The notes: a model not told the origin generated them from the sequence alone. A stretch of 64,000 nt of DNA from Bugula neritina (GCA_964035545.1 OZ037770.1:5156729-5220728), one strand, 5' to 3'; numbered from the stretch's first letter, positions 8,263-62,737 are shown. Translations and numbers: made by a program.

Positions 8263-8620
<358 letters not shown>

Positions 8621-16484: not shown

Positions 16485-16639
16485 TCAACAGTTATTACCG
16501 TACTTAGGCATTAACAAGCTAGCTTACTTACCTATAATTACAGCATTAAAAACGATACGCAACAGTATTTATAATACTGATGCACGCAGTTATTTCAGGA
16601 CAATAGAGGATGAGAATCCATTACACATATCATTGTCAT

Positions 16640-24036: not shown

Positions 24037-24232
<196 letters not shown>

Positions 24233-40670: not shown

Positions 40671-40897
40671 ATGGGAATCTGGTTCAGACATTCTGGACAG
40701 CCTTCTGTAAGCTGGTCAGATGTACAGTCTGCTAATACCAAGTCATATACTACTGCTGAGGTGAAGCGTGAAGTTGGGAGTTATGATATCACAGATCTCA
40801 AACTGGAGAGAACAATTCCAAGTAACATTGGAGAGATTGCTGGTAAAGCCCTGTGTCTATGTGTTTCTAACCTGACTGACAGAGCAAGTCTAGACAA
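40671..40897 (+). CDS. N-terminal coding exon of the LRR-array gene (MGIWFRHSGQP...RASLD)
   Basis: TTTCAG acceptor just upstream of the ATG; 227 nt open frame ending at a phase-2 donor AA|GTGAGT, frame-compatible with the LRR exons; IPSNIGEI resembles an LRR cap. Confidence 0.7.
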
Positions 40898-41496
40898 GTG
40901 AGTGTCTATTAAATAGTAGTGTAAATGTTAAATGAGTTCAGTTGTGTCATTTATTAAATAATAATTGATAATATAATATGCTGAAGCTAAAGCATCTTTT
41001 TGCTCATAATATATTCATACAATATAATATACATCAACATAGTAATATGTGCAACATTGTATGTAATCCAAATGAGCTTATAGTTGTATAGAAACTAGGA
41101 AGTGTACAACTGCCTCTACTCGATATCATTGACTAAAGAACGTTTTATGTATATATAGCTAAAGACTGGAGTAATATACAGTTTATAATATATTATACAA
41201 AAAACTATGTTATGTCATCAACTGCAAATATACAATATTAAACATTAGTTAAGATATAAACTTACATAGCAATTTAGAGTGAGGCCTCATGTACTATAAA
41301 CTAACAGCTAACTTTGCAAAATGAAGCTTCCTCTCCTCATCTACAACATAATATAACTGAAACTCTTTGCTGTTTTTTGCAACAATATATCTGTTTCCTG
41401 CATGTTTTTTCTGTTAAATACACAATTAGCATGATATAATAGTATATATTATTTTGATATGGTAAACATAAATATATGACACACTTTATATTGCAG

Positions 41497-41634
41497 TCTA
41501 TGTCAGCTGACTCAGTTAGAAGAACTAGGCATAGTATCCAATCATCTCCACACAGTACCAGAAGTTGTGTCATCACTCACATCACTTAAAGAGTTGGATA
41601 TGAGCAATTGTGAATTATCTACTCTACCTGAGAG
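41497..41634 (+). CDS. LRR exon 1: LCQLTQLEELGIVSNHLHTVPEVVSSLTSLKELDMSNCELSTLPE
   Basis: 138 bp, CAG acceptor, GTTTGT donor, phase 2-2, two LxxLxLxxN/CxL repeats. Confidence 0.9.
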
Positions 41635-42372
41635 GTTTGTTTTTCACAATATTTCTTCTGTTTTAAACATTCAATATTTGACATCCTTTATACTTCTCAA
41701 ATAGTGTTATGCTATGTTATATATTGGCAGCAAATGTTAAACTCTTGAATATGCATTTTTTGAACTTATCTAATAGCTTGTCGTAACATGAAAATAATAC
41801 AGTTTTATGGTATGCCATTAGTAGTACAGAGTGGTTGATCCTGGGACACTTTTTTCTGGGCCACCCCTATTTTGGTGCACGAAACAACTTTTAATAGAAA
41901 GGCGTGAGACTTGGAACATAAAATTTTTTTTATATTCTTAGCATATAAAAATTTATTATGGTATATAAAACTTGTTTAGCCCGTGCCTATACCTTCGAGG
42001 AAGAAAGATCTAAAGTAATAAATCCTTGAGGTTATAACAAAAGTGTTTAAACGTTATAACTCGAAAATACGGGTTGAGATTCGGTAGATTCTATTATTAT
42101 ATCACCATCCCTCGTTGATATCACTAATTTATTACCAACCGCTCCTTGTAACTTAGGAATAGCGTAACCCGATAAATTATTTATCGTAATAATATCGGTA
42201 ATATTTATACCCGTTTCTACGATATTACCATCGTTCAAAAGCACTAGTAATTTACCTCCGTAGTACAGAGTGGATGATTCTGAGCTACTTTTTCTGGAAC
42301 TCTCCTTATTTTGGTGCACGCCTTGTCTTAAGGAGGGAGTAAAGTTGTTATATGCTGAGAATATAAAATTTA

Positions 42373-43124
42373 CTATAGTATATAAAACTCATCTAGCCCG
42401 TGCTTATACCTTCCATTATTTTTTGAGGAAGAAAGATCTAAAGTAATAAATCGGTGAGGTTTTTGCCAACCTTTATAACAAAAGTCTTTAAATCCGTGTA
42501 AAGGCATATCTCCGCTCATGTGATCTCGATTTAAATTGCTCAGATTTTTACCGTTTTGAGGAAATAAGCAAAAAAAAATTGCGTTTTCTCGAATAGACTG
42601 TCTAGGTAGCTTAAAATAATTTTGCGACAAATAGAAGCAATCGACGTTACTGTGTCGTCCTCTTACATAATATTTTTCACACGCGTTTTGTTTTTCAAGC
42701 ATTAAATCGTCAAACACTATTAGATTAGCGTCTAAATCGCTAGGGTCATAAACTTTATCACTCGATTCAACGAATTCAGCGGTTATATTACCATTACCTG
42801 TAGCGTAATTTTTTAAAATGCGATTTACGTTTATACCTGAATTTATTATCGCGTCGCTATTTTTAAATAATTCTAAAAATTTTTCTTTAGATAGTCCGCG
42901 CTCGAAAGCTTTTTGCATATTGTTATATACGGGTTGATCGAGACTTTTACCATAAACCATAAGTTTATTGTAATCTAGCCAATTAGGTCGTAACAATAAA
43001 TTACAGAGTAAAGTAGTTTTACCGCACCCGACTTTCCAACAATAACACCCTTTATACTTTTAGGGAGTAACGGATTATTATTACGATTAATTTCGTTTTT
43101 CCACGAAGGATTTTGTATTTCCAT
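42373..43124 (-). pseudogene. Polinton DNA-packaging ATPase (A32/FtsK-like), frameshifted in Walker A
   Basis: ATG at 43124; IVGKSG/CGKT split by a 1-nt frameshift at ~43025; Walker B NLIVFDD; RGRH motif; YLSQ. Confidence 0.9.
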
Positions 43125-43136
43125 TTACTATAATAA

Positions 43137-43613
43137 ATGTATTGTTGTAAGTGTCAAACTAAAACTAAAACTCTTAATTACGGAGAGAGAGTAAGTAAAA
43201 ATAACAGACTAATGGGTTACGGTAATTGCGGTCAATGCGGATGTAAAAAGACTACACTTGTTGGGTCGGGTTTAACGAATAATTTAATAAATAATTTATC
43301 CGTTGAATTGCATTACCCCGGCCATAATTTTTTAGGCCCCGGTACTAAATTAAATAAGCGTCTTAATGACGATATGACTCCTAAAGAATGGAGTAAACCA
43401 ATAGATCGAGACGACGCGATAGCTATGAAACACGACATATGTTACGCGCTTAATAAAGATACTAAGACTAGAGACGAAATATGTGATAAAAATATGCTAG
43501 ACGAACTAAAAGCTATACCTAATCTTACGCCCGCTGAACAACGGCATAGCCGTATTGCCTCAGCAATAATAGGAACGAAAAAGCGTTTAGGTTCGGGAAT
43601 TAAAAAAAAATAG
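43137..43613 (+). CDS. PLA2X: parvovirus-VP1-like phospholipase A2 domain protein with N-terminal CxxC...CxxC
   Basis: PGHNFLGPGT calcium-loop motif and DxxAxxHDxxY catalytic motif (DAIAMKHDICY); intact ORF. Confidence 0.88.
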   Translation: MYCCKCQTKTKTLNYGERVSKNNRLMGYGNCGQCGCKKTTLVGSGLTNNLINNLSVELHYPGHNFLGPGTKLNKRLNDDMTPKEWSKPIDRDDAIAMKHDICYALNKDTKTRDEICDKNMLDELKAIPNLTPAEQRHSRIASAIIGTKKRLGSGIKKK

Positions 43614-44521
43614 TTCGTTGGACGGATGAGTTAGCCGAAGAATTGCATAAACCCGTACAAAAAAAGTTTTGTAAAGGACGAGTTTGGGTATCGGGTATTG
43701 ATGACACTTGGGCGGCCGACTTGGTTGACATGACCGAATTCGCTAAATTTAACGACGGTTATAAATATTTACTAACGGTAATAGACGTGTTTTCTAAATA
43801 CGGTTGGATAATACCTTTAAAAAATAAGACCGGTAAAGCGACGGCTTCAGCTTTAAAAACAATTTTAAGCAGCCGTAAGCCACAACATTTATGGGTTGAT
43901 AAGGGAAAGGAATTTTATAACAAAAACGTAAAGTCCTTAATAGACTTATATTCTACGGAAAATGAAGAAAAGTTTAGCGTAGTAGAAAGGTGGAATAGAA
44001 CTATGAAAGAGCGAATGTTTAAATGTTTTTCGGCGAATAATACCTACAGATATATAGACGTATTAAAAGATTTAGTAAAACGGTATAACGAGACTAAACA
44101 TTTGTCTATCGGAATGACACCGATTGAAGCTAGTGACTCCTCTACCGAAAATAAAGTACGTATAAAATTTCATTCTAATTTACTGGCGCCTTCTAAACCT
44201 AAACTCGCTATAGGCAATAGAGTGCGTATACCGCGTAAGAAACGAACGTTTGAAAAAGGTTATACCGTTAGATGGACGGAGGAAACGTTTACGATAAGTA
44301 ACATATTATAAACGAATCCAACGACTTATAAATTAACTGATTCAGGAAGAGAAAAAATTCAAGGATCTTTTTAGGAACAAGAATTACAAAAGACGAGTCA
44401 AGAAATTTATAGAATAGAGCGTGTGATTAAAAAGAAAGGTAAAAAGGCTTTAGTAAAATGGTTGGGTTATCCCGAGTCGCAAAACTCGTGGGTAGATTTA
44501 AACGCTTTAGAACGTTTATAA
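43610..44521 (+). pseudogene. Retroviral-like (rve) integrase with C-terminal chromodomain
   Basis: ELHKP; WAADLVD (D), WVDKGKEF (D), VVERWNRT (E); KGYTVRWTEE; chromodomain YRIERVIKKKGKKALVKWLGYPESQNSW; two premature stops (44309 and ~44372); no in-frame ATG at the start. Confidence 0.92.
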
Positions 44522-44525
44522 ACAT

Positions 44526-44617
44526 GAGTATGGACACAAAAGTGGACACTAGACACGAGTATGGACACAAAAGTGGACACTAGACACAAATATGGACACA
44601 AAAGTGGACACTAGACA
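44526..44617. repeat. Three tandem 31-bp repeats (GAGTATGGACACAAAAGTGGACACTAGACAC)
   Basis: Direct; intergenic, just after the integrase stop. Confidence 0.9.
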
Positions 44618-44641
44618 AGAAACAAATTATATATATAATAA

Positions 44642-45450
44642 ATGAGTTATTTAAAGAGTAATGACCCAGTAAAAAGAGATAAGATCGTACAAGATTTTAT
44701 ATCTCGAAAGAATAGAATAAAAGAAGATTTTGAACGAGAGCGCGCAAGAATTGAACGTCGCAACGGCTCAAGAAAAATATTTTCAACCCGTAACGACTTC
44801 GCAAGCTCAAACGACTGAAGCATTAAAACAATTGCTCGCGTTACCCAATTATAACGTTCAACCAGCTATAACTGATGGAGTTATAAATTTAGACGAATTT
44901 ACTTGAGACGCTTTAGCCGGCTTAGAACCCGGCGCATATAACGTAAAGTGGGACGGTAATAGACAGGTTATTGGTACTAAACCTATAAGTTTTAACGACG
45001 GTAAAATAATTTTCGACGGCGAAGAATATTAAGCGACTAAAAGACTTTTTAAGTATTTTAACGCGTAAAACCCCGATAGGTTATAGCGAAAATGATTTAG
45101 CGAATTACGCTAATATACTCAATAACGGCGGCGCTATATATCAAAGTAAACACGGTCCCGCGGATAAGAATAGTGATAAGTGGAAACAAATGGTTAGACC
45201 TATTTGGGAACAATTATATCCTCAAAGAGCGAAGCGTGCCGATAATAAAAAAGCTAAACGTGGTGACGGAGTAGTTTATTTATCTCAAGACCCCAACGCT
45301 TTAGTAGAATGACTTCAACTGTTATTTTCTAGCGTTCAAGCCGGACATACGAGAGTACAAAACGAAATTGTAGCTATATTAGACGAATTACTTAGAATGA
45401 AAGAAATTACTCGTAACGAGTACAAAAACATTCTTTTATACTTATAATAA
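44642..45450 (+). pseudogene. Conserved Polinton hypothetical protein, disrupted
   Basis: TAAATG start; C-terminal DPNALVE*LQLLFSSVQAGH...NEIVAILDEL matches a motif recurrent in animal Polintons; several stops and frameshifts. Confidence 0.7.
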
Positions 45451-45768
45451 ATGTATGTTTACGATAAAAGACAACGATTGCAAAAACACTACGCCGGTGG
45501 TGGAATATTCAATTCTATTAGGAACGTAGTAAGTAAAAAAGCTGGAAATGCCAGTGTAAGAAAAGCGGCTACGGAAATTGGGAAAAAGGTTATAGCTAAA
45601 GCCAGTAACGCGGCCGGTGAAAAAATTGCTAACGCGATAAGAAATCATGCTACAAGTCGAAAGAAAAAATTAAACGCTAAAAATCGAGCCGTATTAAAAA
45701 TTCTTAGTCAACCGCAAAATAATATTAGTAATATTTTAGAAGGTTCCGGTCAAGCTAAAGATTACTAA
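45451..45768 (+). CDS. Small basic putative virion core protein
   Basis: K/R/A-rich 105 aa with a YAGGGIF glycine motif resembling an adenain cleavage site; lies directly upstream of the capsid gene. Confidence 0.55.
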   Translation: MYVYDKRQRLQKHYAGGGIFNSIRNVVSKKAGNASVRKAATEIGKKVIAKASNAAGEKIANAIRNHATSRKKKLNAKNRAVLKILSQPQNNISNILEGSGQAKDY

Positions 45769-45785
45769 CTTTTTTATTATAATAA

Positions 45786-46215
45786 ATGGACTCTTTGAAC
45801 ATTACACAAAAAATTGTATCCGATACGAGTGTAGAGCGTGATCAGGTAGACGAATACGAACCCGTAACGGGAACAAATTTAAATAATCCCGGTGAAATTA
45901 GAATAGTTATTAATCAGCAAGATTTGTACGTTCAACCGAGTAAAAGTTATTTGATTATCGAAGGTCGTTTAACTAAAGCCGACGGAACCGCTTACGCTGA
46001 CGCCGATCTAGTAACGCTAACGAATAATGGTATGGCTTATTTGTTTAAAAGTATTAAGTATTAACTCGATGGACAAGACTTGGAATATATAAACAATCCG
46101 GGGCACGCTTGACCGTAATGGGTTTGCTAACTTATCCCGACGACTACGGTAAGTCGAGAGGTCTTAATCAACTGTGGTCAAAAGACACTAGTAACGAAGC
46201 CGCAGCCACTAATTT
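45786..46215 (+). pseudogene. Major capsid protein (double jelly-roll/hexon-like), N-terminal ~140 codons only
   Basis: YEPVTGTNLNNPGEIRIVINQQDLYVQPSKSYLIIEGRL..LTNNGMAYLF..NPG..TVMGLLTYPDDY is a typical Polinton MCP N-terminus; contains a stop and a frameshift, then switches abruptly to an unrelated ORF. Confidence 0.8.
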
Positions 46216-46765
46216 AGAAAAAGGTAATGATAAGCTAGCCGTTACAAAAACGTTAAACGATAATATCGTAAAAGCTATAAACGCTAATAAAAAGAATATA
46301 TTACTCAAAATGTCTCCAAAGCTAGTAAAAACTAACGTGAAAATAGAAGGCAGATTTTTAGGTCCGCTAATAGGTATAGCTACGAGAGTATTGCCTACGT
46401 TATTAAAAACTATTATACCCGGTGTGGCAATAGGAGCCCTTTCGGGAGCCGCTAGCGCCGGCGTTGAAAAAGTTATTAAAGGTAAAGGAATTGCTTACAC
46501 CGCTGCAAGAAGTATTATTAGAGGTAAAGGTTTATATTTAGCGAGTGGTAAAGGTTTATATCGATATAAAAACGGTTGTTTTTGTTCGGTCTCTATCTCT
46601 CCCGATGGGGGAAAAATTACGTTAACGAAAGTTGAAAAACCTAAATCTATAACCGGTGATGGTTTATATTTAAAACAGGGTTCTAATTATATAAACGGTA
46701 AAGGTTTACTTTTTGGGCCGAATAGTCCTTTTAAAAATGTTCCCATATTAAATTTTTTTTCATAG
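46216..46765 (+). pseudogene. 5'-truncated Gly-rich core/membrane-active virion protein fused to the capsid stub
   Basis: EGRFLGPLIG amphipathic segment, repeated GKGLYL/GDGLYL motifs, C-terminal GLLFGPNSPFKNVPIL. Confidence 0.6.
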
Positions 46766-46788
46766 TTGAAGAAAAATTTATATTATAA

Positions 46789-47187
46789 ATGACTGATATA
46801 ATGAAAATTATTTATCAAAGCCTCGACGGCACCCAAATTACGGAAACTATTTTTAAAAATGGTAATACCGAAAAACGAATATACGAAGGCGGTGATATGA
46901 AAGAAAAAATGATTTATAAAAAATTTGATATATTAGATGAATTAGAAAACGCGTCTAACGAATGCAGAATGTTTGAAGAAAACATTTACGCTAACAAAAA
47001 AGAAATTATTTACAAAGACAATAATAAAAAATTGAGAATGAAAGTCATTTATAAAACTAAAGAAATAGATCAAGAAATTAATATCGGTTTGTTGAAATAT
47101 GCGCTAGCTAGAATACCCTTATGCGAAGTTAAATTACGATACGCGGAAAATGAATTAGAAAAAAGGAGAAATGACGCTTTAGTTTAA
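46789..47187 (+). CDS. Polinton hypothetical protein (132 aa)
   Basis: Intact ORF with TAAATG start; no recognisable motif. Confidence 0.6.
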   Translation: MTDIMKIIYQSLDGTQITETIFKNGNTEKRIYEGGDMKEKMIYKKFDILDELENASNECRMFEENIYANKKEIIYKDNNKKLRMKVIYKTKEIDQEINIGLLKYALARIPLCEVKLRYAENELEKRRNDALV

Positions 47188-47325
47188 AGAAAATTATTAT
47201 AATAAATGAGAATGGTTACGGCAAACGCGATTCGCTCTCATGACCGATTATTTCGCGCGCTAGTTTAGCAGCCCGCATAGCATTCTTGTTATACTCCATT
47301 TTAATTAATAATTTAGCGTAATTAA

Positions 47326-47800
47326 TTAGCATTGAGCGTCAATTGTTTCAGACTTTTTGTTCACTATTACGACGTTAATGTCCTTATATTTTTCGGCTAT
47401 AGAATTATATTCTTCGTCATCAATATAATCATCGTTTAAAAACTTTGATAACATAGCGTTAATTTCTAATTTAGATTTTTTTATAAACGCGTGCGTGTCT
47501 AAATATAATTGCATTTTTTAATTACTTTAGCATCTTGGAACGTAATGCCCTTTGTTATTACTCCGGCTATTCCGCTTATTATACTAATAGGAATTGCGCT
47601 TATCGCGCCTACACCCATTCCTAATAACGCTACATATAACTGTAGTTATACCGCTTACGCTTATGCAAACTCTTAAAGCCGTCGACAAAGCGCTATATTT
47701 TTTTAATTTCCTATGATAATGACTTTCCATGTTTTGCATTTCATGGCTTAACGCTTGAATTTCATTACGTCTAAATTCGTTAGCTATCAATTCTTATATA
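47326..47800 (-). pseudogene. Frameshifted putative membrane protein of Polintons
   Basis: Two adjacent ORF pieces: a helical segment plus hydrophobic stretch, then SKFLNDDYIDDEEY, like the SKAL.D..I...EF motif of animal Polinton membrane ORFs. Confidence 0.5.
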
Positions 47801-48332
47801 TAAAAAATTGATTTTTATAACGCGATATTTTATATTATGGAGTGGATTGATGAATCAATAGCTCGAGCCGAGCGAAAATAATACGTTAAACTTCCAGAGC
47901 ATAAATTTATGCAATTAATAGATAATTCAAACCTCGTAGGACCTAATTTTTGTGAAAGTAAAAATTGTATTGAATTACCTAAACATTTTAATAAAAAATT
48001 AAATTCTAAGTTTCACAGTCAATGCGTAAAAAATAAAATAGAGCAAGAAGATTTTACCATTTAAAGTTTTTCTTAATAAATGAATGACTTATCAAGAAAA
48101 AATTATTTTAAAATACCGATAGTAAGAGCTTGGTATAAATTTGAACAGGAGCGCGCTATTAAAAAAATAGAATTAAAGTGTTTAAAAAAAAACGAAGAAG
48201 AATTAAATTTACAAAAGGAGCGCGCTATTAAAAAAATAAAATTAAGTTGGTTAAATGATCAAAAAGCTCTTGGAAAAATTAAAACTTCGAGGTATAAAAA
48301 TTGACTTTACCATTTAAAGTTTTTCTTAGTAA

Positions 48333-51300
48333 ATGGAGCCTAACAAAAATGCTATAACGGTCAAAAACCTAAGGGTTTTGGCTAAACAAAGAGGATTAAA
48401 ACGATATTCTCGATTAAAAAAAGCTGAACTTATACGACTATTAACGCCTGTAAATATTATGGACGAACCCATTCCGAATATAGGACAACCACTCTCAAAA
48501 CCCCAACCATTTAAACATATAATAACTAAAATACGCGACTTTGGAAAATGGATTAAACACGAAATAGAAGATAAGGTTACACCACCTTTAAAAATTGCAA
48601 ATGCGTTTATAGAAAAAATTAAAGCGTTATACGATCGACCAAAGCCCGTATTAAAAAATCAAGCGACTAAAAGCTGTTTTCAAACTTATGAAATTAAAGG
48701 TTTACCTAAGTACGATGTAGACTCATTTAGTAAACTAGTAAAATCGGAGATATTAAAATTATTAAAACCCTTTACAAAAGTTAAAATATTATTAGAGTGT
48801 GAAATGGAAAAAATTGATATAAATACCGGTGAAACTACGTCAATAATTACACCATTTTCATCCCGTAATGAAATTATATTAGAGTCTACAAATGTTGATG
48901 AATTATACGATGAAATGATTGAGCGTATAAAAGAAAATTTCGCTTCGTTTAACGCGAAAGGAAGTAATTGGATATTTAAATCTATTACAAAAATGGAAGT
49001 TATTATTAATAAATAAAAACCTTTTAATGGGTCATCATGGATTGATCTTCCGGAAAAAATAAAAAAAGCCGTAATAAACCCTAAAAATAAAGATAATGAG
49101 TGCTTCAAGTGGGCTGTTTTAGCGTCACTCTTTCCGGCTAAAAATAAAGCCGAAAGAATATTCAACTATAAAGTATCGTGAGAAGGTGTTGAGTTTCCGG
49201 CTAATAAAAAATCTATCGAAGCTTTTGAAAAAGCTAATCCTAATATCAGCGTTAACGTATTAACGTGGAATGGTTCAACAATAAATTTGTGGAGACAATC
49301 CGAAGAACGAGAAAAAGTTGTAAATTTACTTCTTATAACTGATGAAGAAAAGAGTCATTATGCGTGTATTAAAAATATTGGCAAACTACTCGGCTCGCAA
49401 ATAAATAAGCGCGCTAATGCGAAGCATTTATTTTTTTTAATTGTATGAATGCGTTTCGATATAAAAAATCTTTAAACAAGCATCCAAAATGGTGTGCCTC
49501 AAATAATAGCGTAACTACAATCTTTCCTAAACTCGAGGATAAAATAAAATTTAAATTTAAACATTATTGTTATAAAATGAGAGTACCGTTTGTAATATAC
49601 GCAGACTTTGAATGTTTTACTAAGCTTATACAAAGCTGTGCCACAGTTAGTTTAAGGTCATTACTTTCCACATTCAGGCACTGCTTTATGTTATATATAA
49701 ACGGTTTCCAGGGGATAGCTCGAACAGTTTTTGTCTCACATTAACAAATTTGAAAAGATAGCTCTTGCATTCCTCTTTCATATACTTTTTTAATTTTTCA
49801 ATAAAAAAATTTCTGAGAAAGTTGTTGCATAATAAGTAAAATTTTACACCCTCCATGTTCCACTGCTGTAGCACAGGGGATTCATTTTATAAAGTCTAAA
49901 AGTTAAACTTGACATTCCTTGATATGTTTTCTCTAATATACTTTCTTTGTTTTTTGAAATTCTGTTTATGCTCTTCACAATTTAGTAAAAACATACACCA
50001 TTTTGCAAGTTTCACTGCAATTATCTAAATTCTTCATATGGTGGTTCTAGCTACGCTCCTGTGACTAATTATAACATTCCTAGTACGTTTGCTGCTCTGC
50101 GCTATCACAATAACGCACAAATTGGCAATCTATTGGATTTCTGCCAATATAATGTTCCCTGTTTTACATTAGCACTTAGCTGAATCATCTCACTATGTTA
50201 CAATCTATTGACAATGCCTCAGCACAACATAATTGTTTGTTTGGCAGAGTTAATTTTAGCTAAATCACTTCACTTTGCAGTCTTGTCAGTAAAGGTCTGT
50301 CTATAGCGCAGCAGGTGTATACTTCCAGTTTCTCTAATTCACATATGATTATTTTAAGTACATTGTATTCTATAAGATCAATTTAATGTTTAGCCCAGTG
50401 TTCAGTAGCTAAGTATTATGCATGTATGTTGTCTTACTGTTGAACAAAAGTTAAAAAAAAACTTTACAATTATAGCCATATTTATTATACATGCGTAGGA
50501 TTTGCATAAATTGACAAAAAAAATGCAGCATACTAGGATTGAACCATGACCAACCAGCTTCTCGCCGACGCCTTTAACCTCTGGACCACGCAGTCATCGT
50601 TAATTAATTGCCAACTATATGAGTAACTATGAGTACATAAATATTTCGCTCGCAAATGGGTTATAATTATTAGGCTGTCAATTCATGTTGATAGCAGTCA
50701 ACTGTTGCAATAGTCTCGGGTTACTAGCAAAGCTAATGGTTTTAAACAAATACCCAAAAGTTTAAAAATAAGTAGCTTGCGTATTACTAGCTACAAAAAC
50801 AGGTCTGAAATAGACTGGTAAAGCAAGCTCTTATTGTAGAGTTTGCAGATGTGCTCTAAAATAAAACTTAAACTGTATGCTATTACATAAGTATTTGTAT
50901 GCGAGAGATATAAATGGACATTACTGAGTTTCTGGAAAACAACATACTTGAAGTTAACTTTGACAATGGTGTTTTCTTTTCATCATAGCTAGCCTATAGC
51001 ATAAATCTCTAATCATATGAATCTTTATGAAGCCCACAGCTCATGTAAGGGTGGCAATGTAATTTGAAACGAACAATTATGTTGCTGCATTGTGTCTAAG
51101 GTATATTAGAGAGCAGAATTTGGTTTTACTAGCCTACCCCAACGGCATTCTACAATGCAGCTTATATGCTGGCAGTTGTAATAAGTACAGCCGATAGCAA
51201 GGTTACTATCACTGCTAGCTCTGTGCAGTATGTAACCTCTTGAATAATTGTGCCAATTTTAAACTCTTGGAAGTTGGCCAAGTTATCATATCGCAGCCAG

Positions 51301-54300: not shown

Positions 54301-54534
54301 TTAAAGGAATTAATACATCTACGCGCGATAAACGTATAACGTTTGAGGATTATAAAGAGTATTTATTAACGTGGCGAGATCAACATAGAACGATGAACGT
54401 GCTGAAAAGTCATAAGCATACGGTGTACGCCGAAACGATAAACAAAGTACCTAGCTTTGTCAGCCGAAGATGATAAGAGAATTATACTCGAAGACGGTAT
54501 AACGACGGTTCATTATAGATATATAAATGAATAA
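48333..54534 (+). pseudogene. Protein-primed family B DNA polymerase (pPolB), disrupted by stops, frameshifts and a 2.5-kb insertion
   Basis: N-terminal Rho-N-like LRVLAKQRGLKRYSRLKKAELI; ExoI PFVIYADFE; EndoVII-like CHIC..RDHCH..YRGAAH..CNL; ExoII HNLSGYDAH; polymerase motifs YLDANNLYGWAM, NNSVFGK, TDTDS; C-terminal LSAEDDKR. Confidence 0.95.
49642..52178. mobile_element. 2537-bp non-autonomous CAC...GTG DNA transposon (CMC-like) inserted in pPolB
   Basis: Perfect 20-bp TIR CACAGTTAGTTTAAGGTCAT; flanks TGC/TGA (imperfect 3-bp TSD); removing it restores pPolB ...IQSCEPNSKKSYT...QHEPSGF; host-like CpG-poor composition. Confidence 0.9.
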
Positions 54535-54907
54535 AGCGCTTACGAACATTGATATCGATAGTGATTAAAAAATTAAGAATTCCTAATTTTAGAGGAGTAT
54601 TTTTGAGAGATGAATTGCCCGATAAGCCACGACAAAAAGAATGTGGTGTATTAAATTTAGATAATTTAATGGGAGGCGGTACTCATTGGGTTGCTTGGTA
54701 CAAAAATAAAAAAAAAAATATTATATTATTTGTTTTGGACTTCAGCCTCCTCTAGAAATAATGAACTATTTAAAGGCGCCCGTGTTCTATTATACGGAAC
54801 GAGTGCAAGAATTCGGTGCGGTTATATGCGAACACTTGTGTTTATATTGGCTCAAAGAAATGTCTAAAATAGAGTCGCCTCAATTAATTATAAGTAATTT
54901 ACTATAA
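54527..54907 (+). pseudogene. Adenain-like cysteine protease, frameshifted
   Basis: FRGVFLRDELP, NLD...GTHWVAW (catalytic His), FGLQPP, VQ....ICEHLCLYWL (Gln and Cys). Confidence 0.88.
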
Positions 54908-54910
54908 TAA

Positions 54911-55430
54911 ATGAGTCCCGTATACATATTTGGCGGTTCCGCGGAACCCACTATTATTACGATTAACCCGTATTTTACGAATACTATAAAACAAACAGAT
55001 TTCGAATATAGAAATAATAATTTTATAGCTCATATGGTTTTAAATTATATAACCAATAAACGTATTAAATTAACTTACGCGTTAATAGATTTTCATAATG
55101 AATACATATATAGTAATAGAGAAATATATTGGACTGATAAACAACTTAGATTATTAGTTTGGGATAATACAAAACCACCTACATACGATAATGTAAAGTT
55201 ACTGATTACGATATTAGTGGTAATATACATAACATTCCTTACATTAAAATTCCAATTAATAAAACTATTGAGGCTAATAAAAACTTTCAAATAATGTTAA
55301 TATGTAATAAAAATTTTCCTACTCATAAACCGGATGACGTAATTCTTACGGATGTTGTACATCCTAATCAAACGCCTCAAGAAAGTTTTTTACCTTTCCA
55401 TAACGCTTCAATGAAATTATATTATAACTA
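54911..55430 (+). pseudogene. Polinton accessory paralog A (MSPVYIFGGS...), frameshifted
   Basis: Shares KRIxLTYxLIxFH, YWxDKxL, HKPDDV and PFH...KLYY with the neighbouring gene and with 63140-64000. Confidence 0.65.
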
Positions 55431-55437
55431 TATATAG

Positions 55438-55925
55438 ATGAGTCCGGTATATTTATTTGGTGGTTCTTCCGAAAATATAAAAGAAGAAAACTATATCGAA
55501 AGAAATATAAATCAAAATCAAAATAATTTTATACAAACTTTTAGTAATGAGATTAGCACGGCGTTATCGTTGGGTTTTATAGTAGATAAACGAATAGAAT
55601 TAACTTACGGGCTAATACAATTTCACGAGCGTCCTAGTAATATTCCTTTATATTGGAAAGATAAAAAATTAACGCTAATAATTGGAGATACGACAACACC
55701 TCTCGAGCACGTTATTAAGGAATATTTTATTCGAGGTGACGAGCATAATGTTTCGTATATTAAAATTCCTATATTAGAAATTATTAACGAGGGTAAAAAT
55801 ATCGGGTTAATATTAGAGTGTTCAAATAATTTTACGAGTCGTAAACCCGATGATGGAACGGTTGATAATGACGCGCCTATATATCTATACCATTCGAGTT
55901 AGTGTCATTAAAATTATATTATAAA
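55438..55925 (+). CDS. Polinton accessory paralog B (MSPVYLFGGS...)
   Basis: ORF 55438-55902, with a probable late frameshift before the KLYYK end; same family as paralog A. Confidence 0.65.
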
Positions 55926-56821
55926 TGAGTCTTGTGTATATATTTGGAGGAACGTCAAACGACGTAATTAATAAAATAAATGACGATTTCGTTTTATGAG
56001 ACGGTAGTAATACGCTTACGGGTACTTTGGATATGGGCGTTAATAAAATATCTAGAGTCGTTGATCCCGTTGACGATCAAGACGCGGCTACAAAAAAATA
56101 CGTTGATGACGCGAGTATACCAAAAATACGAAACCCTAATTAAAAATTAGTCGTATCAAATGAAGAAGGTAATGTTGTAAATAGCAGCTTAAGCGTTAAC
56201 GATGTCGTTAAGAAATCGTCTAGTTACGCTATGCCTATTATACGAAACCCTATTAACCAATTAACCATATCAACTGACGCCGGTTACGTTATAGATAGCT
56301 ATTTAAAAGTTGACGATGTTATTACGAAAACTAATGTATCTAATCACGCTATGCCTCTTATACAAAATCTAACAAATAAATTAACCGCGTCGACAGATAT
56401 CGGTATCGTTGTTGACAGTAAGTATTAGTAAGTATAAGTATTAGCGAATATAGATAAACACGCTATTATACCCCTTATAAATAATCCTAATAATAAATTA
56501 ACCGTATCGACTAATACTGGTAGCGTTGAAGATAGTAATTTAAGCGTTAGCGACGTTATTATGACTAGTAATATAAATAATTTCGCTATGCCTAAAATAC
56601 AACCGTCAATCGGAGGTAAATTACTAATGCTTTCGAACGATGGTAATATCGTAGAAACGGGTATAAATATTACCAATATTATTACGATAAATAATATATC
56701 GGGTTACGCTATTTCTAAATTACAAGGAGCGGTTGGTAATAAATTAGTAATATTAACGAGCGATGGTGATATAATAGAATCTACCGAATCTCAACCCGTA
56801 TTTTTGAGTTATAACGTTTAA
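55925..56821 (+). pseudogene. Fibre/spike-like protein with about six ~40-aa repeats, disrupted
   Basis: MSLVYIFGG start; LDMGVNKISRVVDPVDDQDAATKKYVD stalk motif typical of viral fibres; ~120-bp repeat units (YAMPxIxN..NxLT.ST..G.V.DS). Confidence 0.7.
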
Positions 56822-57310
56822 ACACTTTTGTAATAACCTGACGGATTTATTACTTTAGATCTTTCTTCCTCGAAGGTAAAGGCACGGGCTAAACGAGTTT
56901 TATATACCATAATAAATTTTTATATGCTAAGAATATAAGAAAAATTTTATGTCCCAAGTCTCATGCCTTTCTATTAAAAGTTGTTTCGTGCACCAAAATA
57001 GGGGTGGCCCAGAAAAAAGTGTCCCAGGATCAACCACTCTGTACTACTGCCATTGTATATCCTTATATCACAATTTTTTTTACAATTATAATAATAAAAT
57101 AGCCATCTGTAGTTTACTTGCAATCATGGAAATGACTGAATGCTTTTTAGCTTTTTGTCTTATTGACTTTGACTATCCATTACCACAATGAAAATGTATT
57201 TTGCATGGTTTACCTGGTTGAGTGCATCAAATCAATATAATCTATACGGTATATATCATTATGACACATTAGACTACATGCAACTCTATTTTTTTATGAT
57301 TATTATGCAG

Positions 57311-57448
57311 TCTGTGTCAGCTGACTCAGTTAGAGAAACTAAACATAGGATCGAATCCTCTCTACACAGTATCAGAAGTTGTGTCATCACTCACCGCACT
57401 TAAAGAGTTGAATATGGACAGATGTAACTTATCTACTCTACCTGAAAA
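57311..57448 (+). CDS. LRR exon 2: LCQLTQLEKLNIGSNPLYTVSEVVSSLTALKELNMDRCNLSTLPE
   Basis: 138 bp, AG/GT, phase 2-2. Confidence 0.9.
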
Positions 57449-57904
57449 GTTTGTGTGCCACAACAAATTTTATATATCATTTTCAACGTTCCATAATTGT
57501 TACTTTAAAGCAGAATTTCAACACAGTAAATACTACATTAAGATGTTTATACCTTTTCTCTGCAAAACTACATATGAATCTCATCGTTTCTGGGGATATT
57601 GTCAATTAGCACACTGTCTATATAAAAATTTCCTCTGCTTCACAAGTTCTTTCATTGTATTTCTTTAGCTTTTTGAATATTTCCCATGATAGGTTGATTG
57701 GGCTGCTTTTCAGAAATCGTTTTAATAACTATTTTTAATATATTATAACTATAGCTACTTCTGTACACATAATTGGTATATATTATATTATTATAGTAAC
57801 ACAGTTTTTATATTACTGTCTAATTGAATGCACAAGTGCTATATACAGTACATAATATTATCCTGATACAGTGGATTAGATATATTATGCCGTTTATATT
57901 GCAG

Positions 57905-58042
57905 TCTATGTCAGCTGACTCAGCTAGAGAAACTAGACATAAGAGGAAATCCTCTCAGCACATTACCAGAAGTTGTGTCATCACTCTCATCACTTAAGGA
58001 GTTGAATATGGAAAACTGTAAATTATCTAATCTACCTGAGAG
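57905..58042 (+). CDS. LRR exon 3: LCQLTQLEKLDIRGNPLSTLPEVVSSLSSLKELNMENCKLSNLPE
   Basis: 138 bp, AG/GT, phase 2-2. Confidence 0.9.
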
Positions 58043-58470
58043 GTTTGTGGAACACAGTCTTTCTTGTTTCAAACACTCAATAATTCACATGTTGATATAA
58101 TGCTTACCAAGTATGGGGAATTAGTATGTCACTATGTATTGCTGGAAAGCATAAAGCAATAAATTACATATTTCTTGAGACTATATGATATTAGAGCTTC
58201 TCAAAACTTGAAAATAGATATGTTTCAGTTATATGGCATTACATTTCCTATTGCTATAAAACCTTCTTCCACAAATACTATATAGCACCCACTTGTACTT
58301 CACTAGAATCTATTTCACATTAAATGTCTTTTACTTTGAATATGCCTTGGGGCAAGAAATTTGTTTTTTTTTGCATGTTATACCTGATTGAATACACAAG
58401 TATAGTAGACAGAGTACGTACTATTATCCTGGTACAGTGGATTACATAAGTTATGCACTTTATATTACAG

Positions 58471-58608
58471 TCTATGTCAGCTGAATCAGTTAGAGAAACT
58501 AAACATGAGAAGAAATCCTCTCTACACAGTACCAGAAGTTGTGTCATCACTCACATCCCTTAAGGAGTTGAATATGTGGAGCTGTAAATTATCTACTCTA
58601 TCTGAGAG
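58471..58608 (+). CDS. LRR exon 4: LCQLNQLEKLNMRRNPLYTVPEVVSSLTSLKELNMWSCKLSTLSE
   Basis: 138 bp, AG/GT, phase 2-2. Confidence 0.9.
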
Positions 58609-59055
58609 GTTTGTGGAACACAGTCTTTCTGGTTTCAAACACTCAATGATTCACATGTTGATATAATGCTTACCAAGTATTGCTAATTAGTATGTCACTA
58701 TGTATTGTTGAAAAGCATAACGCCACAAATTACATAGTTCTTGACGCTATATGATATTAGAGTTTTTGAAAATTTGAAAATAAATGTGTTTCAGTAATGT
58801 GGTATTACATTTCCTATTGCTATAAAACCTTCTTCAACAAACACTATATATAAGCATCTGATTGCAGTTTACTAGAATCTATTTTACATTAAATGCTTAT
58901 TAGCTTTCGGAACTTTACTTTGAATTTGCTTTGCATGTTGCAGTAAATTTGTTTCTTGAATATTTTACCTGATTGAATACACAAGTATAGTATACACAAT
59001 ATATAATAATATCCTGATACAGTGGATTCCATATATTATGCATTTTATATTACAG

Positions 59056-59193
59056 TCTATGCCAGCTGACTCAGTTAGAGAAACTACACATGGGATGGAA
59101 TCCTCTCAAAACAGTACCAGAAGTTGTGTCATCACTTACATCACTTAAGGAGTTGATTATGGAAATCTGTAACTTATCTACTCTACCTGAAAG
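59056..59193 (+). CDS. LRR exon 5: LCQLTQLEKLHMGWNPLKTVPEVVSSLTSLKELIMEICNLSTLPE
   Basis: 138 bp, AG/GT, phase 2-2. Confidence 0.9.
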
Positions 59194-59631
59194 GTTTGTG
59201 AAACACAGCCTTTCTTGTTTCAAACACCTCATAAGTGACATATTGATATAATGCTTACCAAGTATGGGGAATTAGTATGTCACTATGTATTGCTGGAAAG
59301 GATAAAGCTATAAATTACATATTTCTTGAGCCTATATGATATTAGAGCTTCTCAAAACTTGAAAATAGATATGTTTCAGTTATATGGCATTACATTTCCT
59401 ATTGCTATATAAACTTCTTTAACAAATACTATAACACCCACTTGTGATTTACTAGAATCTATTTTACATGAAATCCTCATTAGTTTTTGATATTTTGCTT
59501 TGAATTTGTTTTGTTGCAATAAATTTGTTTCTTGGATATTTTACCTGATTGAATACACAAGTATAGTATACACAGTATATAATAATATCCTGGTGCAGTG
59601 GATTACATTTATTATGCACTTTATACTACAG

Positions 59632-59769
59632 TCTATGTCAGCTGACTCAGTTAAAAAAGCTAAGCATAGGATTTAATCCTCTCGACACTGTACCAGAAGT
59701 TGTGTCATCACTCACATCACTTAAAGAGTTGGATATGGGGAGCTGTAGATTATCTAATCTACCTGCGAG
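59632..59769 (+). CDS. LRR exon 6: LCQLTQLKKLSIGFNPLDTVPEVVSSLTSLKELDMGSCRLSNLPA
   Basis: 138 bp, AG/GT, phase 2-2. Confidence 0.9.
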
Positions 59770-60318
59770 GTTTGTGGAACACAGTCTTTCTTGTTTCAAA
59801 CACTCAATAATTCACATGTTGATATAATGCTTACCAAGTATTGCTAATTAGTATGTCACTATGTATTGTTGAAAAGCATAAAGCTATAAATTACAATTTT
59901 CTCAAGACTATATTGTATTAGAGTTTCTCATTACTTGAAAATAAATATGTTTCAGTTATCTGGCATTACATTTCCTATTGCTATAAAACCTTCTTCAACA
60001 AATACTATAGCACCCATTTGTGGTTTAATAGAATCCATTCACATTAAATATATGTAATTCACTGTACCAGGATAATAGTACATATTACGTTTACTATACT
60101 TGTGTACTCAATTAGGTATAACATGCAAAAAAACAAATTTCTTGCACCAAGGCATATTCAAACTGAAAGACATGTCTTTTACTTTGAATATGCCTTGGCG
60201 CAAGAACTTACTTTTTTTTTGCATGTTATACCTGCTTGCTTACACAAGTATAGTAAACAGGGTACGTACTATTATCCTGATACAGTGGATTACATATAGT
60301 ATGCACTTTATATTACAG

Positions 60319-60456
60319 TCTATGTCAGCTAACTCAATTAGAGAAACTGGACATAAGATTTAATCTTCTCAACACAGTACCAGAAGTTGTGTCATCACTC
60401 ACATCCCTTAAAGAGTTGCATATGTGGAGATGTATATTATCTACTCTACCAGTGAG
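60319..60456 (+). CDS. LRR exon 7: LCQLTQLEKLDIRFNLLNTVPEVVSSLTSLKELHMWRCILSTLPV
   Basis: 138 bp, AG/GT, phase 2-2. Confidence 0.9.
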
Positions 60457-60867
60457 GTTTGTGAAACACAGTCTTTCTTGTTTTAAACACTTAATAATTC
60501 ACATATTGATACAATGTATTGCTAATTAGTATGTCACTATGCATTGTTGAAAAGCGTAACGCTATAAATTACATATTTCTTGAGCCTATATGATATTCGA
60601 GTTTTTGAAAACTTGAAAATAAATATGTTTCAGTTATCTGGCATTACATTTCCTATCGCTATAAAACCTTTTTAACAAATATTATAGCACCTACTTGTGG
60701 TTTACTATAGTGTGTATTTCTCATTAAATGGTTATTAGAGCCTTCTGTACTTTACTTTGAATATGTCTTAGCGTAATAAATTTGCTACTTGGATATTTTA
60801 CTTGATTGAATATACGGTACATGTTATGATACAGTAGACTAAATATATCACATACTTTATATTACAG

Positions 60868-61005
60868 CCTGTGTCAGCTAACTCAATTAGAGAAACTGGA
60901 CATAAGATTTAATCTTCTCAACACAGTACCAGAAGTTGTGTCATCACTCACATCACTTGAAGAGTTGAATATGTCGGAATGTAAATTATCTATTCTACCT
61001 GAGAG
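60868..61005 (+). CDS. LRR exon 8: LCQLTQLEKLDIRFNLLNTVPEVVSSLTSLEELNMSECKLSILPE
   Basis: 138 bp, AG/GT, phase 2-2. Confidence 0.9.
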
Positions 61006-61463
61006 GTTTGTGTGCCACAACAATTTTTTTATATCACATTTAACATTCAATAATTGTTATTTTAAAGCAGAATTTCAACACAATAAATACGTACTGCATT
61101 AAGATGTTTATACTTTTTCTCTGCAAAACTACATATGAATCTCACCGTTTCTGGGGATATTGTCAATTAGCACATTATCTATAAAAATTATTTCTACTTC
61201 ACAAATTATTGTATAGTATTTCTATATCTCCTTGAATATTTCCCATGATAGGTTGACTGGGCTGTTTTTCAGAAATCGTTCTAATAACTCTTTTCATTAT
61301 ATTATAATGATAGCTACTTCTGCACACATAATTGGTATATATTATATTATTATAGTAAACACAGTTTCTTATTACTGTCTAATTGAATGCACAAGTGCTA
61401 TATGCAGTACATAATATTATCCTGATACAGTGGATTACATATATTATGCACTTTATATTACAG

Positions 61464-61601
61464 TCTGTGTCAGCTGACTCAGTTAAAGAAACTAGACATA
61501 AAAGGAAATCCTCTCAACACATTACCAGAAGTTGTGTCATCACTCTCATCACTTAAGGAGTTGAATATGGAAAACTGTAAATTATCTACTCTACCTGAGA
61601 G
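61464..61601 (+). CDS. LRR exon 9: LCQLTQLKKLDIKGNPLNTLPEVVSSLSSLKELNMENCKLSTLPE
   Basis: 138 bp, AG/GT, phase 2-2. Confidence 0.9.
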
Positions 61602-62041
61602 GTTTGTGAAACACAGTCTTTCTTGTTTCAAACACTCAATAATTCACATGTTAATATAATGCTTACCATGTAAAGGGAATTAATATGTCACTATGTATTG
61701 ATAAAAAGCATAAAGCTATAAATTACATATTTCTTGAGCCTATATAATATATTGGAGTTTCTCAAAACTTGAAAATAACTATGTTTCAGTTATCTGGTAT
61801 TACATTTCCTATTGCTATAACACCTTCTTTAACAAATACTATAACACCCACTTGTAGTTTACTAGAATCGATTTCACAAGAAATGCTTCTTAGCTTTCGA
61901 CATTTTACTTTGAATTTGCTTTGTTGCAATAACTTTGTTTCTTGGATATTTTACCTGATTGAATACACAAGTATAGTATAAAGAGTACATACTATTATCC
62001 TGGTACAGTGCATTACATATATTATGCACTTTGTATTACAG

Positions 62042-62179
62042 TCTATGTCAGCTGACTCAGTTAGATAAACTAGACATACGATTTAATCCTCTCAACACAG
62101 TACCAGAAGTTGTGTCATCACTCACATCACTTAAAGAGTTGAATATGTGGAGCTGTAAAATATCTACTCTACCTGCGAG
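62042..62179 (+). CDS. LRR exon 10: LCQLTQLDKLDIRFNPLNTVPEVVSSLTSLKELNMWSCKISTLPA
   Basis: 138 bp, AG/GT, phase 2-2; matches ORF track 62031-62237. Confidence 0.9.
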
Positions 62180-62599
62180 GTTTGTGGAACACAGTCTTTC
62201 TTGTTTCAAACACTCAATAATTCACATGTTGATATAATGCTTACCAAGTATTGCTAATTAGTATGTCACTATGTATTGATGAAAAGCATAAAGCAATAAA
62301 TTACATATTTCTTGAGGCTACATGGTATTAGAGTTTTTGAGAACTTGAAAATGAATATGTTTCAGTTATCTGGCATTACATTTCCTATTGCTATAAATCT
62401 TTTTCAACAAATATTATAGCACCCAATTGTACTTTACTATAGTGCGTATTTCTCATCAAATGGTTATTAGAGCCTTCTGTATTTTACTTTGAATATGTCT
62501 TAGCGTAATAAATTTGCTATTTGGATATTTTATTTGATTGAGTATGCAGTGCATGTTATGATACAGTAGACTAGATATATCACATACTTTATATTACAG

Positions 62600-62737
62600 T
62601 CTGTGTCAGCTGACTCAGTTAGAGAAACTAAACATAGGATCGAATCCTCTCTACACAGTATCAGAAGTTGTGTCATCACTCACCGCACTTAAAGAGTTGA
62701 ATATGGACAGATGTAACTTATCTACTCTACCTGAGAG
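62600..62737 (+). CDS. LRR exon 11, near-identical to exon 2: LCQLTQLEKLNIGSNPLYTVSEVVSSLTALKELNMDRCNLSTLPE
   Basis: 138 bp, AG/GT, phase 2-2. Confidence 0.9.

Follow-up and report, generated by a model that had tools for sequence, protein, structure and literature searches.

The 64-kb stretch of Bugula neritina DNA analyzed here (the window) probably carries the 5' part of a gene for a bryozoan cytosolic LRR-ROCO-caspase receptor that belongs to a large, recently expanded family, with the 3' end of the gene deduced from its relatives. The array of LRR exons in the window, the selection acting on its variable codons and the gene structure of related loci make this gene a candidate intracellular immune receptor.

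An array of 138-bp LRR exons

Downstream of a leader exon, the window contains 11 LRR exons, all of exactly 138 bp and phase 2-2, with intact AG/GT splice sites and no stop codons. The mapped features are as follows (positions counted from the first letter of the window):

40671..40897, + strand: leader coding exon, from the Met to a phase-2 GTGAGT donor, 76 codons
41497..41634, + strand: two-LRR exon 1, 138 bp, phase 2-2
41820..57048, no strand assigned: decayed Maverick/Polinton with terminal inverted repeats (TIRs) and target duplication, inside the intron that separates LRR exons 1 and 2
57311..57448, + strand: two-LRR exon 2, differing from exon 11 by 2 nt
57905..58042, + strand: two-LRR exon 3, differing from exon 9 by 6 nt
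58471..58608, + strand: two-LRR exon 4, 138 bp
59056..59193, + strand: two-LRR exon 5, 138 bp
59632..59769, + strand: two-LRR exon 6, 138 bp
60047..60298, + strand: intronic foldback in which 126 nt of the pre-acceptor region recur in inverted orientation
60319..60456, + strand: two-LRR exon 7, with a 5' tract common to exon 8
60868..61005, + strand: two-LRR exon 8, mosaic
61464..61601, + strand: two-LRR exon 9, 138 bp
62042..62179, + strand: two-LRR exon 10, 138 bp
62600..62737, + strand: two-LRR exon 11, with an intact donor
62760..64000, - strand: second Maverick-like element (terminal palindrome and ORF), extending past the window end

Each 138-bp unit encodes two LRRs (Pfam), alternating between an Asn-type and a Cys-type. 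Exons 2-11 have a start-to-start spacing of 549-687 bp, in agreement with a preliminary description of this DNA, which counted 11 intact symmetric exons mostly about 550-690 bp apart; its lists of residues at the variable positions of LRR1 and LRR2 also match throughout. Exons 1 and 2 are separated by 15.8 kb because a Maverick has inserted between them, and once this element is subtracted the intron measures ~447 bp. Since exons 2 and 11 differ by only 2 nt, the 11 exons encode 10 distinct peptides. Homology searches used individual exons, exons given by reference or an exon alignment; the modeled structure is that of a natural Watersipora relative.

The leader exon encodes an N-terminal cap and a degenerate first LRR, and the array follows directly after this exon and its conserved Met, with no N-terminal STAND NTPase. 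The leader has 25 paralogs with 73-87% amino acid identity, most of them called as the same 76-codon ORF, and matches the first exon of the Watersipora ROCO gene XP_067936779 weakly (pairwise E = 0.009, probability 4.6%). A hydrophobic signal peptide, already reported as missing from the window, was found neither in its leader exon nor in the 25 paralogs, which supports a cytosolic product. The suggestion that the Met-Gly start hints at membrane tethering did not survive comparison: all 24 paralogs that show residue 2 have K, R, I or E there, and 0 of 24 have Gly. We accordingly rejected a myristoylation signal; on these alignments the Met-Gly start is peculiar to the window copy.

Maverick elements within and after the array

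The insert between exons 1 and 2 has AGTAGT termini, TIRs of ~440 bp (95% identical) and a 6-bp target duplication, GCCATT. It carries an A32-like ATPase (Pox_A32, E = 1.3e-3), a PLA2-like ORF, an rve integrase (E = 1.8e-9) and a family-B polymerase broken into several ORFs (DNA polymerase PHROG, E = 6e-5), and its ORFs lie mostly on the sense strand. By its AGT-starting TIRs, 6-bp duplication, integrase, ATPase and polymerase, this insert classifies as a Maverick/Polinton. An unrelated insert is found inside it at ~49644-52179. The second Maverick-like element begins ~25 nt after exon 11 and carries at its terminus a 123-bp palindrome whose ends are Maverick-like; its ORF shares 39% identity with one located at an end of the first element.

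These insertions bring up the alternative that the window copy is a recently inactivated pseudogene in a birth-and-death family, silenced by the two Mavericks. The 15-kb element between exons 1 and 2, whose ORFs are mostly on the sense strand, and the one after exon 11 would fit this, as would the loss of upstream sequence similarity: that between window and paralogs ends 45 nt upstream of the ATG, whereas the paralogs share 75-126 nt among themselves. Among the Ectocarpus ROCO genes, 20 of 37 were first predicted to be pseudogenes, and ten in the refined genome (PMC11378527). However, all 12 exons are open with intact splice sites, and the first Maverick shows decay, with TIRs diverged by 5% and broken ORFs, in contrast to its flanking exons. 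We regard inactivation as unlikely.

Selection on the variable codons

In the two LxxLxLxxNxL motifs, the 12 x codons chosen a priori take 69% of the non-synonymous differences, compared with 27% expected (permutation p = 1.5×10−5). The proposal that changes cluster at the x positions of LxxLxLxxN/CxL thus holds overall, but not for the two leading x positions in each motif (codons 8, 9, 31 and 32), which are conserved; the variable patch consists of codons 11, 13, 14, 18 and 34, 36, 37, 39. The dN/dS check that the preliminary description had called for gave the signal that it anticipated, with omega of ~7 under M2a at face and loop codons both in 10 window exons (M1a vs M2a, 2ΔlnL = 36.2) and in 20 exons including paralogs (2ΔlnL = 87.5). 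Codons 11, 13, 14, 18, 36 and 37 were identified as positively selected, with 34 and 39 added in the 20-exon set, and omega reached 3.7-6.3 at the a-priori x sites versus ~0.5 in the backbone. Neutral simulations with free recombination gave a maximum 2ΔlnL of 30.4 in 46 runs. Register on the AlphaFold model of the Watersipora relative places the beta-strand at codons 9-11 of the unit; the variable residues thus map to the end of each predicted strand and the adjacent loop, and the codon comparisons demonstrate strong positive selection there.

A tree-free check gave the same picture, with codon positions 1 and 2 differing by 0.41 on the face and 0.052 in the backbone, compared with 0.136 in introns; the face codons diverge three times faster than introns. 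At the synonymous sites of the backbone, pS is 0.134, and third positions differ by 0.136, the same as the intron distance. The backbone, previously described as nearly invariant even at synonymous sites, is therefore conserved as protein only, and we rejected synonymous-site invariance, which would have suggested strong homogenization. The LRR exons contain no stops where ~5 are expected under neutrality (5% of ~106 substitutions), and no indels, as against ~6 gaps per intron pair; the LRR scaffold is evidently under purifying selection. A targeted mutator of the DGR or AID type was also rejected: face codons change among all bases, often at several adjacent positions, with no single-base bias. 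These comparisons support diversifying selection on the presumed binding face; positive selection alone does not prove immunity.

Duplication, gene conversion and possible exon skipping

Several units of the array are close copies of one another. Exons 2/11 and 3/9 differ by 2 and 6 nt, introns 2/8 and 7/10 are 91% and 92% identical, and flanking sequences place 7 units in a window-specific clade. Exons 7 and 8 have a common tract (p = 0.0002, uncorrected), with exon 8 being a mosaic whose 5' half resembles exon 7 and whose flanks are those of exons 2 and 11. A global PHI-like recombination test was not significant (p = 0.18), and only pairs 7/8 and 2/11 stand out. As read from these copies, tandem duplication, unequal crossing-over and gene conversion enlarge and alter the array, with the frame kept.

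A programmed, VLR-like somatic rearrangement that assembles or edits the array in single cells or zooids appears very improbable. Its appeal lies in the modular, hypervariable units with clear traces of conversion between exons, and in a host that forms clonal colonies, where somatic variants could be passed on. However, the units are ordinary spliced exons in a complete-looking gene rather than an intronless cassette pool, and the face-codon changes show no single-mutator bias. No heptamer-nonamer (RSS-like) pairs were found, only a heptamer-like word in the intron sequence shared after 6 exons. Paralogous loci in two assemblies, which may both derive from the same DNA, agree in exon number and order, and germline processes account for everything seen. 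The best reading of the array is germline diversification by exon duplication, gene conversion and selection.

Since every LRR exon keeps the frame, exon skipping is possible, and a less likely alternative is that combinatorial skipping, perhaps steered by RNA pairing, multiplies the repertoire of the same family within each colony. The exons are all symmetric and of one phase, and LRR exons of Ectocarpus ROCO genes are reported to be alternatively spliced (PMC11378527). The intron-6 foldback forms a predicted hairpin (-145 kcal/mol, z = -21.7) that covers the region before exon 7, ending ~20 nt short of its acceptor, and its inverted arm is predicted to pair also upstream of exons 4, 5, 6 and 10. 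On the other hand, splice sites look uniformly canonical, and the foldback is absent from the paralogous arrays L015 and L002, and is therefore not a conserved Dscam-like docking system.

Relatives and the 3' end of the gene

At least 25 close paralogs are present in a JGI metagenome, which is probably Bugula neritina; the 19 exon and 25 leader clusters of paralogs are all from JGI, and two loci (L002 and L004) contain the same exon array. The window family seems to be unannotated, since the best 150 matches in a 50%-identity protein library included no multi-exon protein of the window subfamily; repeat masking is a possible reason.

The same class of gene, with its 3' end, is seen in related loci. 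In Watersipora, XP_067936779 has a leader and then two-LRR exons of 141 bp (phase 2-2) that keep the register of the window exons; its single ROC-COR exon precedes a caspase model. RefSeq XP_067949509 joins LRR, Roc, COR and caspase in one model. In the JGI sample, L016 has a two-LRR exon, a ROC-COR exon, a linker and caspase exons, its LRR exon belonging to another subfamily (~41% identity to the window exons); L017 and L018 have ROC-COR followed by caspase, with no LRR exon in the 3 kb upstream. The same phase-1 donor closes all four bryozoan ROC exons, and in-frame linker acceptors are present in L016-L018; at L012 a scripted scan found none, and NCBI splits the locus into two models. ROC domains of relatives with this exon class have G1, G3 and G4 motifs, COR-A matches in the Watersipora relatives fall below the Pfam gathering score, and the caspase exons retain His and Cys. 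In a tree with long branches and without vertebrate MFHAS1, ROC-COR of the bryozoan type is a separate clade (SH-aLRT 100) that excludes a Dreissena "MFHAS1 homolog"; six further JGI ROC matches, of unchecked source, fall in the same clade. The expectation that a ROC-COR effector lies downstream is thus borne out by relatives that share exon class and register with the window array; the C-terminal caspase had not been foreseen.

The window itself contains no ROC and ends inside the inserted element, and no contig joining a window-subfamily exon to a ROC exon was found in L002, L004, L015, L017 or L018. Conceivably, members of the subfamily are LRR-only proteins that act as decoys, adaptors or SHOC2-like scaffolds, or they carry another effector. 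The solved structures closest to the array are SHOC2 and Leptospira LRR proteins; two RefSeq models of the wider family are LRR-only (XP_067930875 and Watersipora XP_067932916, the latter with 138-bp and ~160-bp phase-2 exons); and in amphioxus and Lingula, relatives carry GT4, OTU, Death or CARD-type domains at their ends instead. However, exon 11 has no C-terminal cap and an intact donor, and the gene therefore continues 3' of it; several paralogous ROC exons (3 checked) occur in the JGI sample, and caspase exons follow 4/4 bryozoan-clade ROC exons that have downstream DNA. We consider these other endings quite improbable.

A possible mode of action

For the LRR-ROCO-caspase reading, the family plan would be leader - (two-LRR exon)n - LRR-ROC-COR exon - acidic linker - caspase, and we infer the same 3' end for the window gene beyond the second Maverick. 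Dimerization of ROCO proteins depends on the nucleotide (PMC6337361). A foreign or non-self ligand may bind the variable LRR face and shift the ROC-COR monomer-dimer equilibrium, which would bring the fused caspases together and lead to cell death or inflammatory proteolysis; such a protein would work as a one-piece NLR-plus-caspase. Receptor diversity would be mainly germline, the product of many paralogs, different arrays and alleles.

Bugula carries a bryostatin-producing symbiont. A bolder reading, which we hold to be speculative and on balance doubtful, is that bryozoan colonies deploy dozens of directly acting LRR-ROCO-caspase death receptors against pathogens, symbionts or neighboring colonies, with exon skipping or somatic rearrangement multiplying the specificities. 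If true, this would be an anticipatory intracellular repertoire in a lophotrochozoan, with many specificities per gene in one colony.

Comparison with known systems

In the literature searched we found no description of a bryozoan LRR-ROCO-caspase family or of such a design in animals, nor any work on intracellular immune receptors or allorecognition genes of bryozoans. Among the closest known genes are the Watersipora subatra models XP_067936779 ("MFHAS1 homolog"), XP_067949509 ("uncharacterized") and P0289 ("caspase-3-like"), which share exon class, phase, register and the ROC-COR clade of the JGI-sample ROC exons, with the caspase fused or adjacent; they differ in having 141-bp or 138/160-bp exons and ~40-45% repeat identity, and their annotation is automatic only. 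Amphioxus MFHAS1-like LRR-ROC-COR expansions (XP_066297267, XP_035697784, XP_078697542), the top whole-protein matches, have the same 46-aa Asn/Cys two-LRR period, ROC-COR, many repeats and variable x positions, but encode LRRs and ROC-COR in one long exon (aa 1-1439), carry GT4-like, OTU or Death effectors, and place their ROC-COR in a separate clade.

Lamprey and hagfish VLRs also vary on the LRR concave face, whereas the bryozoan units are spliced exons inside one gene, with no intronless cassette pool and no signal peptide. Dscam has repeated exon cassettes as well; the bryozoan foldback, unlike a docking system, is single (intron 6) and not conserved. NLRs share the variable concave face and, with the apoptosome, the sensor-switch-death logic, but the bryozoan LRRs are N-terminal and the presumed switch is a GTPase instead of NACHT/NB-ARC.

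Brown algal ROCO genes (Ectocarpus, Saccharina; PMC3341825, PMC11378527) resemble the bryozoan family in tandem identical-length phase-2 LRR exons, concave-side positive selection, family expansion, LRR-ROC-COR order and a proposed immune role. In the algae each 72-bp exon holds a single LRR and no effector is fused, while the bryozoan, an animal, has two alternating LRRs per 138-bp exon and a C-terminal caspase in relatives; the likeness is probably convergent. Bacterial LRR-AP-GTPase(ROC)-COR-effector counter-invader systems (PMC8195603) have fast-evolving N-terminal LRRs, ROC-COR, a variable C-terminal effector that includes caspase, and several paralogs per genome, but they are prokaryotic and intronless, and the bryozoan ROC-COR falls outside the bacterial ones sampled.

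The comparison leaves a concrete, expanded and positively selected candidate family, whose genes automatic annotation misses or splits, and makes testable the activation of caspases by ROCO dimerization, the skipping or rearrangement of LRR exons, and bryozoan non-self recognition. Among animals, the family would parallel the exon-shuffled ROCO receptors of brown algae and would be a counterpart of the LRR-ROC-COR-caspase design reported for bacterial defence, with sensor, switch and executioner in one chain.

Structure of the gene in the window

The gene opens with a leader coding exon and continues with eleven exons of 138 bp, each encoding two LRRs (Asn-type first, Cys-type second). The phase 2-2 boundaries, intact AG/GT sites and zero stops reported for these exons in the preliminary description were all verified, and its residue lists match the exons exactly. 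Exons 2-11 are spaced by 549-687 bp; the 15.7-kb gap 3' of exon 1 is a decayed Maverick/Polinton, without which the intron would measure ~447 bp, resembling the other introns.

Features of the window
40671-40897: leader coding exon, 227 bp, phase-2 GTGAGT donor
41820-57048: decayed Maverick/Polinton between LRR exons 1 and 2, with TIRs, target duplication and coding genes
60047-60298: intron 6 foldback, in which 126 nt of pre-acceptor sequence recur in inverted orientation
62760-64000: second Maverick-like element, beginning ~25 nt past exon 11 and leaving the window
3718-4475 / 10452-11209; 27887-28363; 49644-52179: MITE-like dispersed repeats with inverted ends
1231-1922, 8263-8600, 24040-24229, 39081-39569: long simple-sequence arrays (TG-rich octamer, TA, AT, GTA/GCA)

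The element at 41820-57048 has terminal inverted repeats of ~440 bp (95%, starting AGTAGT), is flanked by a 6-bp target duplication, and codes for an integrase, an A32-like ATPase and a DNA polymerase, the last of them broken; at 42260-42492 it also has a second TIR-like copy, which is older (70%). The element at 62760-64000 opens with a near-perfect palindrome of 123 bp. Both are of the Maverick/Polinton type and entered introns of one gene independently, and since the second runs past the window edge the 3' end of the gene is not visible. Positions 10000-17100 hold degraded Gypsy-type LTR retrotransposon sequence (GC 41-57%), ~70% similar to an element inserted 3' of the array in JGI contig L002.

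An acceptor-like AG 5 nt upstream of the ATG (40660-40670) is kept in paralogues, so that an upstream untranslated exon is possible; paralogue similarity of the window copy ends 45 nt before the ATG.

An expanded family

Searches run exon by exon retrieved 19 clusters of LRR-exon paralogues (58-86% aa) and 25 of leader paralogues (73-87% aa), all from JGI; every paralogue contig fetched belongs to JGI samples 3300002729 and 3300003318. The names of these contigs include AY690838, under which the Bugula neritina mitogenome is deposited (PMC2678162), and the MITE-like window repeats are common to these contigs (up to 85-94% in the best-matching stretches), consistent with their coming from the same or a close species. 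Arrays like that of the window occur in contigs L004 and L002. The window leader is 88-89% identical to these paralogues, which are 86-89% identical among themselves and thus no closer to one another. Together with the grouping of ROC exons given below, this makes Bugula or a near bryozoan relative the most likely source. A meaning previously attached to the Met-Gly start has to be dropped, residue 2 being K, R, I or E in 24 of the 24 paralogues that show it.

Similar two-LRR phase-2 exons of 141-144 bp, varying at equivalent positions, are present in three ENA loci (L006-L008; ERZ1740062, ERZ1740068). Three ENA LRR-ROC-COR proteins (P0051, P0017, P0071) contain many near-identical two-LRR units that differ at the same x positions as the window exons.

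Selection on the LRR exons

Of the non-synonymous differences, 69% lie at the 12 x codons that the two LxxLxLxxNxL motifs contain (27% expected, p = 1.5e-5), in keeping with the proposed variation on concave-face x positions; the first x positions (8, 9, 31, 32), however, are conserved. In codon models of 10 window exons M2a was favored over M1a (2dlnL = 36.2; omega 6.8 on 13% of sites), with codons 11, 13, 14, 18, 36 and 37 positively selected. Adding 10 paralogous exons raised 2dlnL to 87.5 and added codons 34 and 39; omega was 3.7-6.3 at a-priori x sites versus ~0.5 on the backbone. Because recombination inflates tests of this type, neutral data were simulated with the tree redrawn at random after each codon or each block of 5 codons; the highest of 46 statistics was 30.4, and the tail was heavy, so that the nominal p-value of the M2a test overstates the case. 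Tree-free distances agree with these results: positions 1+2 of face codons differ by 0.41, as compared to 0.136 in introns. Backbone differences are 0.052 at positions 1+2 and 0.136 at third positions, equal to introns; the supposed synonymous invariance of the backbone was therefore mistaken, and the scaffold is conserved at the protein level only. The data show a modular LRR array under positive selection, in an expanded family.

The exons contain no stops (~5 expected neutrally) and no indels, versus ~6 gaps per intron pair; that the window copy is a recent pseudogene seems unlikely.

The register was read off a Watersipora relative as modeled by AlphaFold (pLDDT 89), a SHOC2- and LIC11098-like solenoid with its strand at unit codons 9-11. 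On the concave face, this places the variable patch at the strand ends and following loop, predicted to make up the distal half of this face. Contigs L004 and L015 both assemble the same paralogous array, and their sole exonic difference (L004 3144) is His/Asn at codon 18, a positively selected site, reflecting either an allele or a misassembly.

Evolution of the array

Exons 2 and 11 are 2 nt apart, exons 3 and 9 are 6 nt apart, and intron pairs 2/8 and 7/10 are 91-92% identical. Exons 7 and 8 have a 5' tract in common, yet differ in the group to which their flanks belong (uncorrected p = 0.0002 in a run test, ~0.01 after 55 pairs). In flanks and backbone, seven of the window's units group as a clade specific to this gene (100/99). 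The array changes by germline tandem duplication and conversion, which the symmetric exon phase allows, and its sequence requires no somatic mechanism. Somatic rearrangement is very improbable: neither recombination-signal pairs in the window array nor mutator bias in base changes at face codons were found, and exon number and order are identical in two assemblies of paralogous loci (possibly the same DNA).

In Watersipora XP_067932916, 138-bp and ~160-bp phase-2 exons are irregularly ordered, as expected from exon shuffling. A frameshifted additional LRR exon remnant, missing from the RefSeq model, lies inside the array of Watersipora XP_067936779 (locus L012, ~27450-27570).

The intron 6 foldback (-145 kcal/mol) ends ~20 nt upstream of exon 7; its inverted arm pairs better upstream of exon 4 than upstream of neighboring exon 7, and it is absent from the paralogous arrays compared. 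It could bias exon skipping, possibly as a chance-born splicing regulator; skipping as a further layer of diversity is conceivable, if doubtful.

ROC-COR and caspase exons in relatives

Watersipora XP_067936779 has a leader exon, then 141-bp phase 2-2 two-LRR exons with the same repeat start and end positions as the window, then a single ~2 kb exon encoding the last LRRs, ROC and COR, with a caspase model directly downstream. JGI contig L016 carries a two-LRR exon, a ROC-COR exon, an acidic linker and caspase exons in this order; L017 and L018 run from ROC-COR through linker to caspase, and all three come from the same sample as the close paralogues. ROC exons of this sample and of Watersipora subatra fall into one group (SH-aLRT 100). 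Identical phase-1 donors end 4/4 ROC exons; in-frame linker acceptors are present in L016-L018, and our script found none in L012. The caspase exons keep the catalytic His and Cys (S/THG and x-ACSG/ACAG), and RefSeq XP_067949509 spans LRR-Roc-COR-caspase in one model.

The active-site pentapeptide of the caspase has His or Glu at its first position, where Gln is usual (HACSG, EACSG; L016 5528-5776, L017 6456-6824, L018 7485-7721), a difference that may alter substrate specificity or activity. In the NCBI annotation, ROCO-caspase genes of Watersipora (L012 37887-42992; models P0289 and P0336) are split or mislabeled, appearing as 'MFHAS1 homolog' beside a separate caspase model, 'caspase-3-like' or 'uncharacterized'; P0336 begins with apparent retrotransposon sequence.

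ROC-COR and caspase are seen in relatives only. The L016 LRR exon belongs to a sister subfamily (~41%), and none of the contigs examined combines a ROC exon with sequence of the subfamily to which the window gene belongs. An LRR-only product or a different effector is rather improbable. We consider the gene to encode, probably, a ligand-switched LRR-ROCO-caspase receptor with a positively selected modular array; this reading, exon skipping, somatic rearrangement, a pseudogene and an LRR-only product or other effector are not mutually exclusive.

Initiator caspases are switched on by induced proximity. ROCO proteins alternate between monomeric and dimeric forms depending on their nucleotide state (PMC6337361). 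Judging from these two lines of biochemistry, ligand at the variable LRR face would activate the fused caspase, and the protein would be a single-chain counterpart of the NLR-caspase platform.

Comparison with known systems

By the features compared, the gene falls outside the VLR, NLR and Dscam classes. As to ROCO membership, the window itself contains no ROC, its sequence ending within the second Maverick-like element. Searches of the open-access literature turned up no account of ROCO genes in bryozoans, and none, for animals, of ROCOs whose LRRs are exon-modular or of fusions between ROCO and caspase. Amphioxus MFHAS1-like proteins have the same 46-aa period, but their repeats are encoded by a single exon and their effectors are different. 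The family would work like the exon-shuffled ROCOs of brown algae, with their 72-bp one-LRR phase-2 exons, concave-side selection and alternative splicing (PMC3341825, PMC11378527), and like bacterial LRR-AP-GTPase-COR-effector systems, which count caspase among their effectors (PMC8195603).
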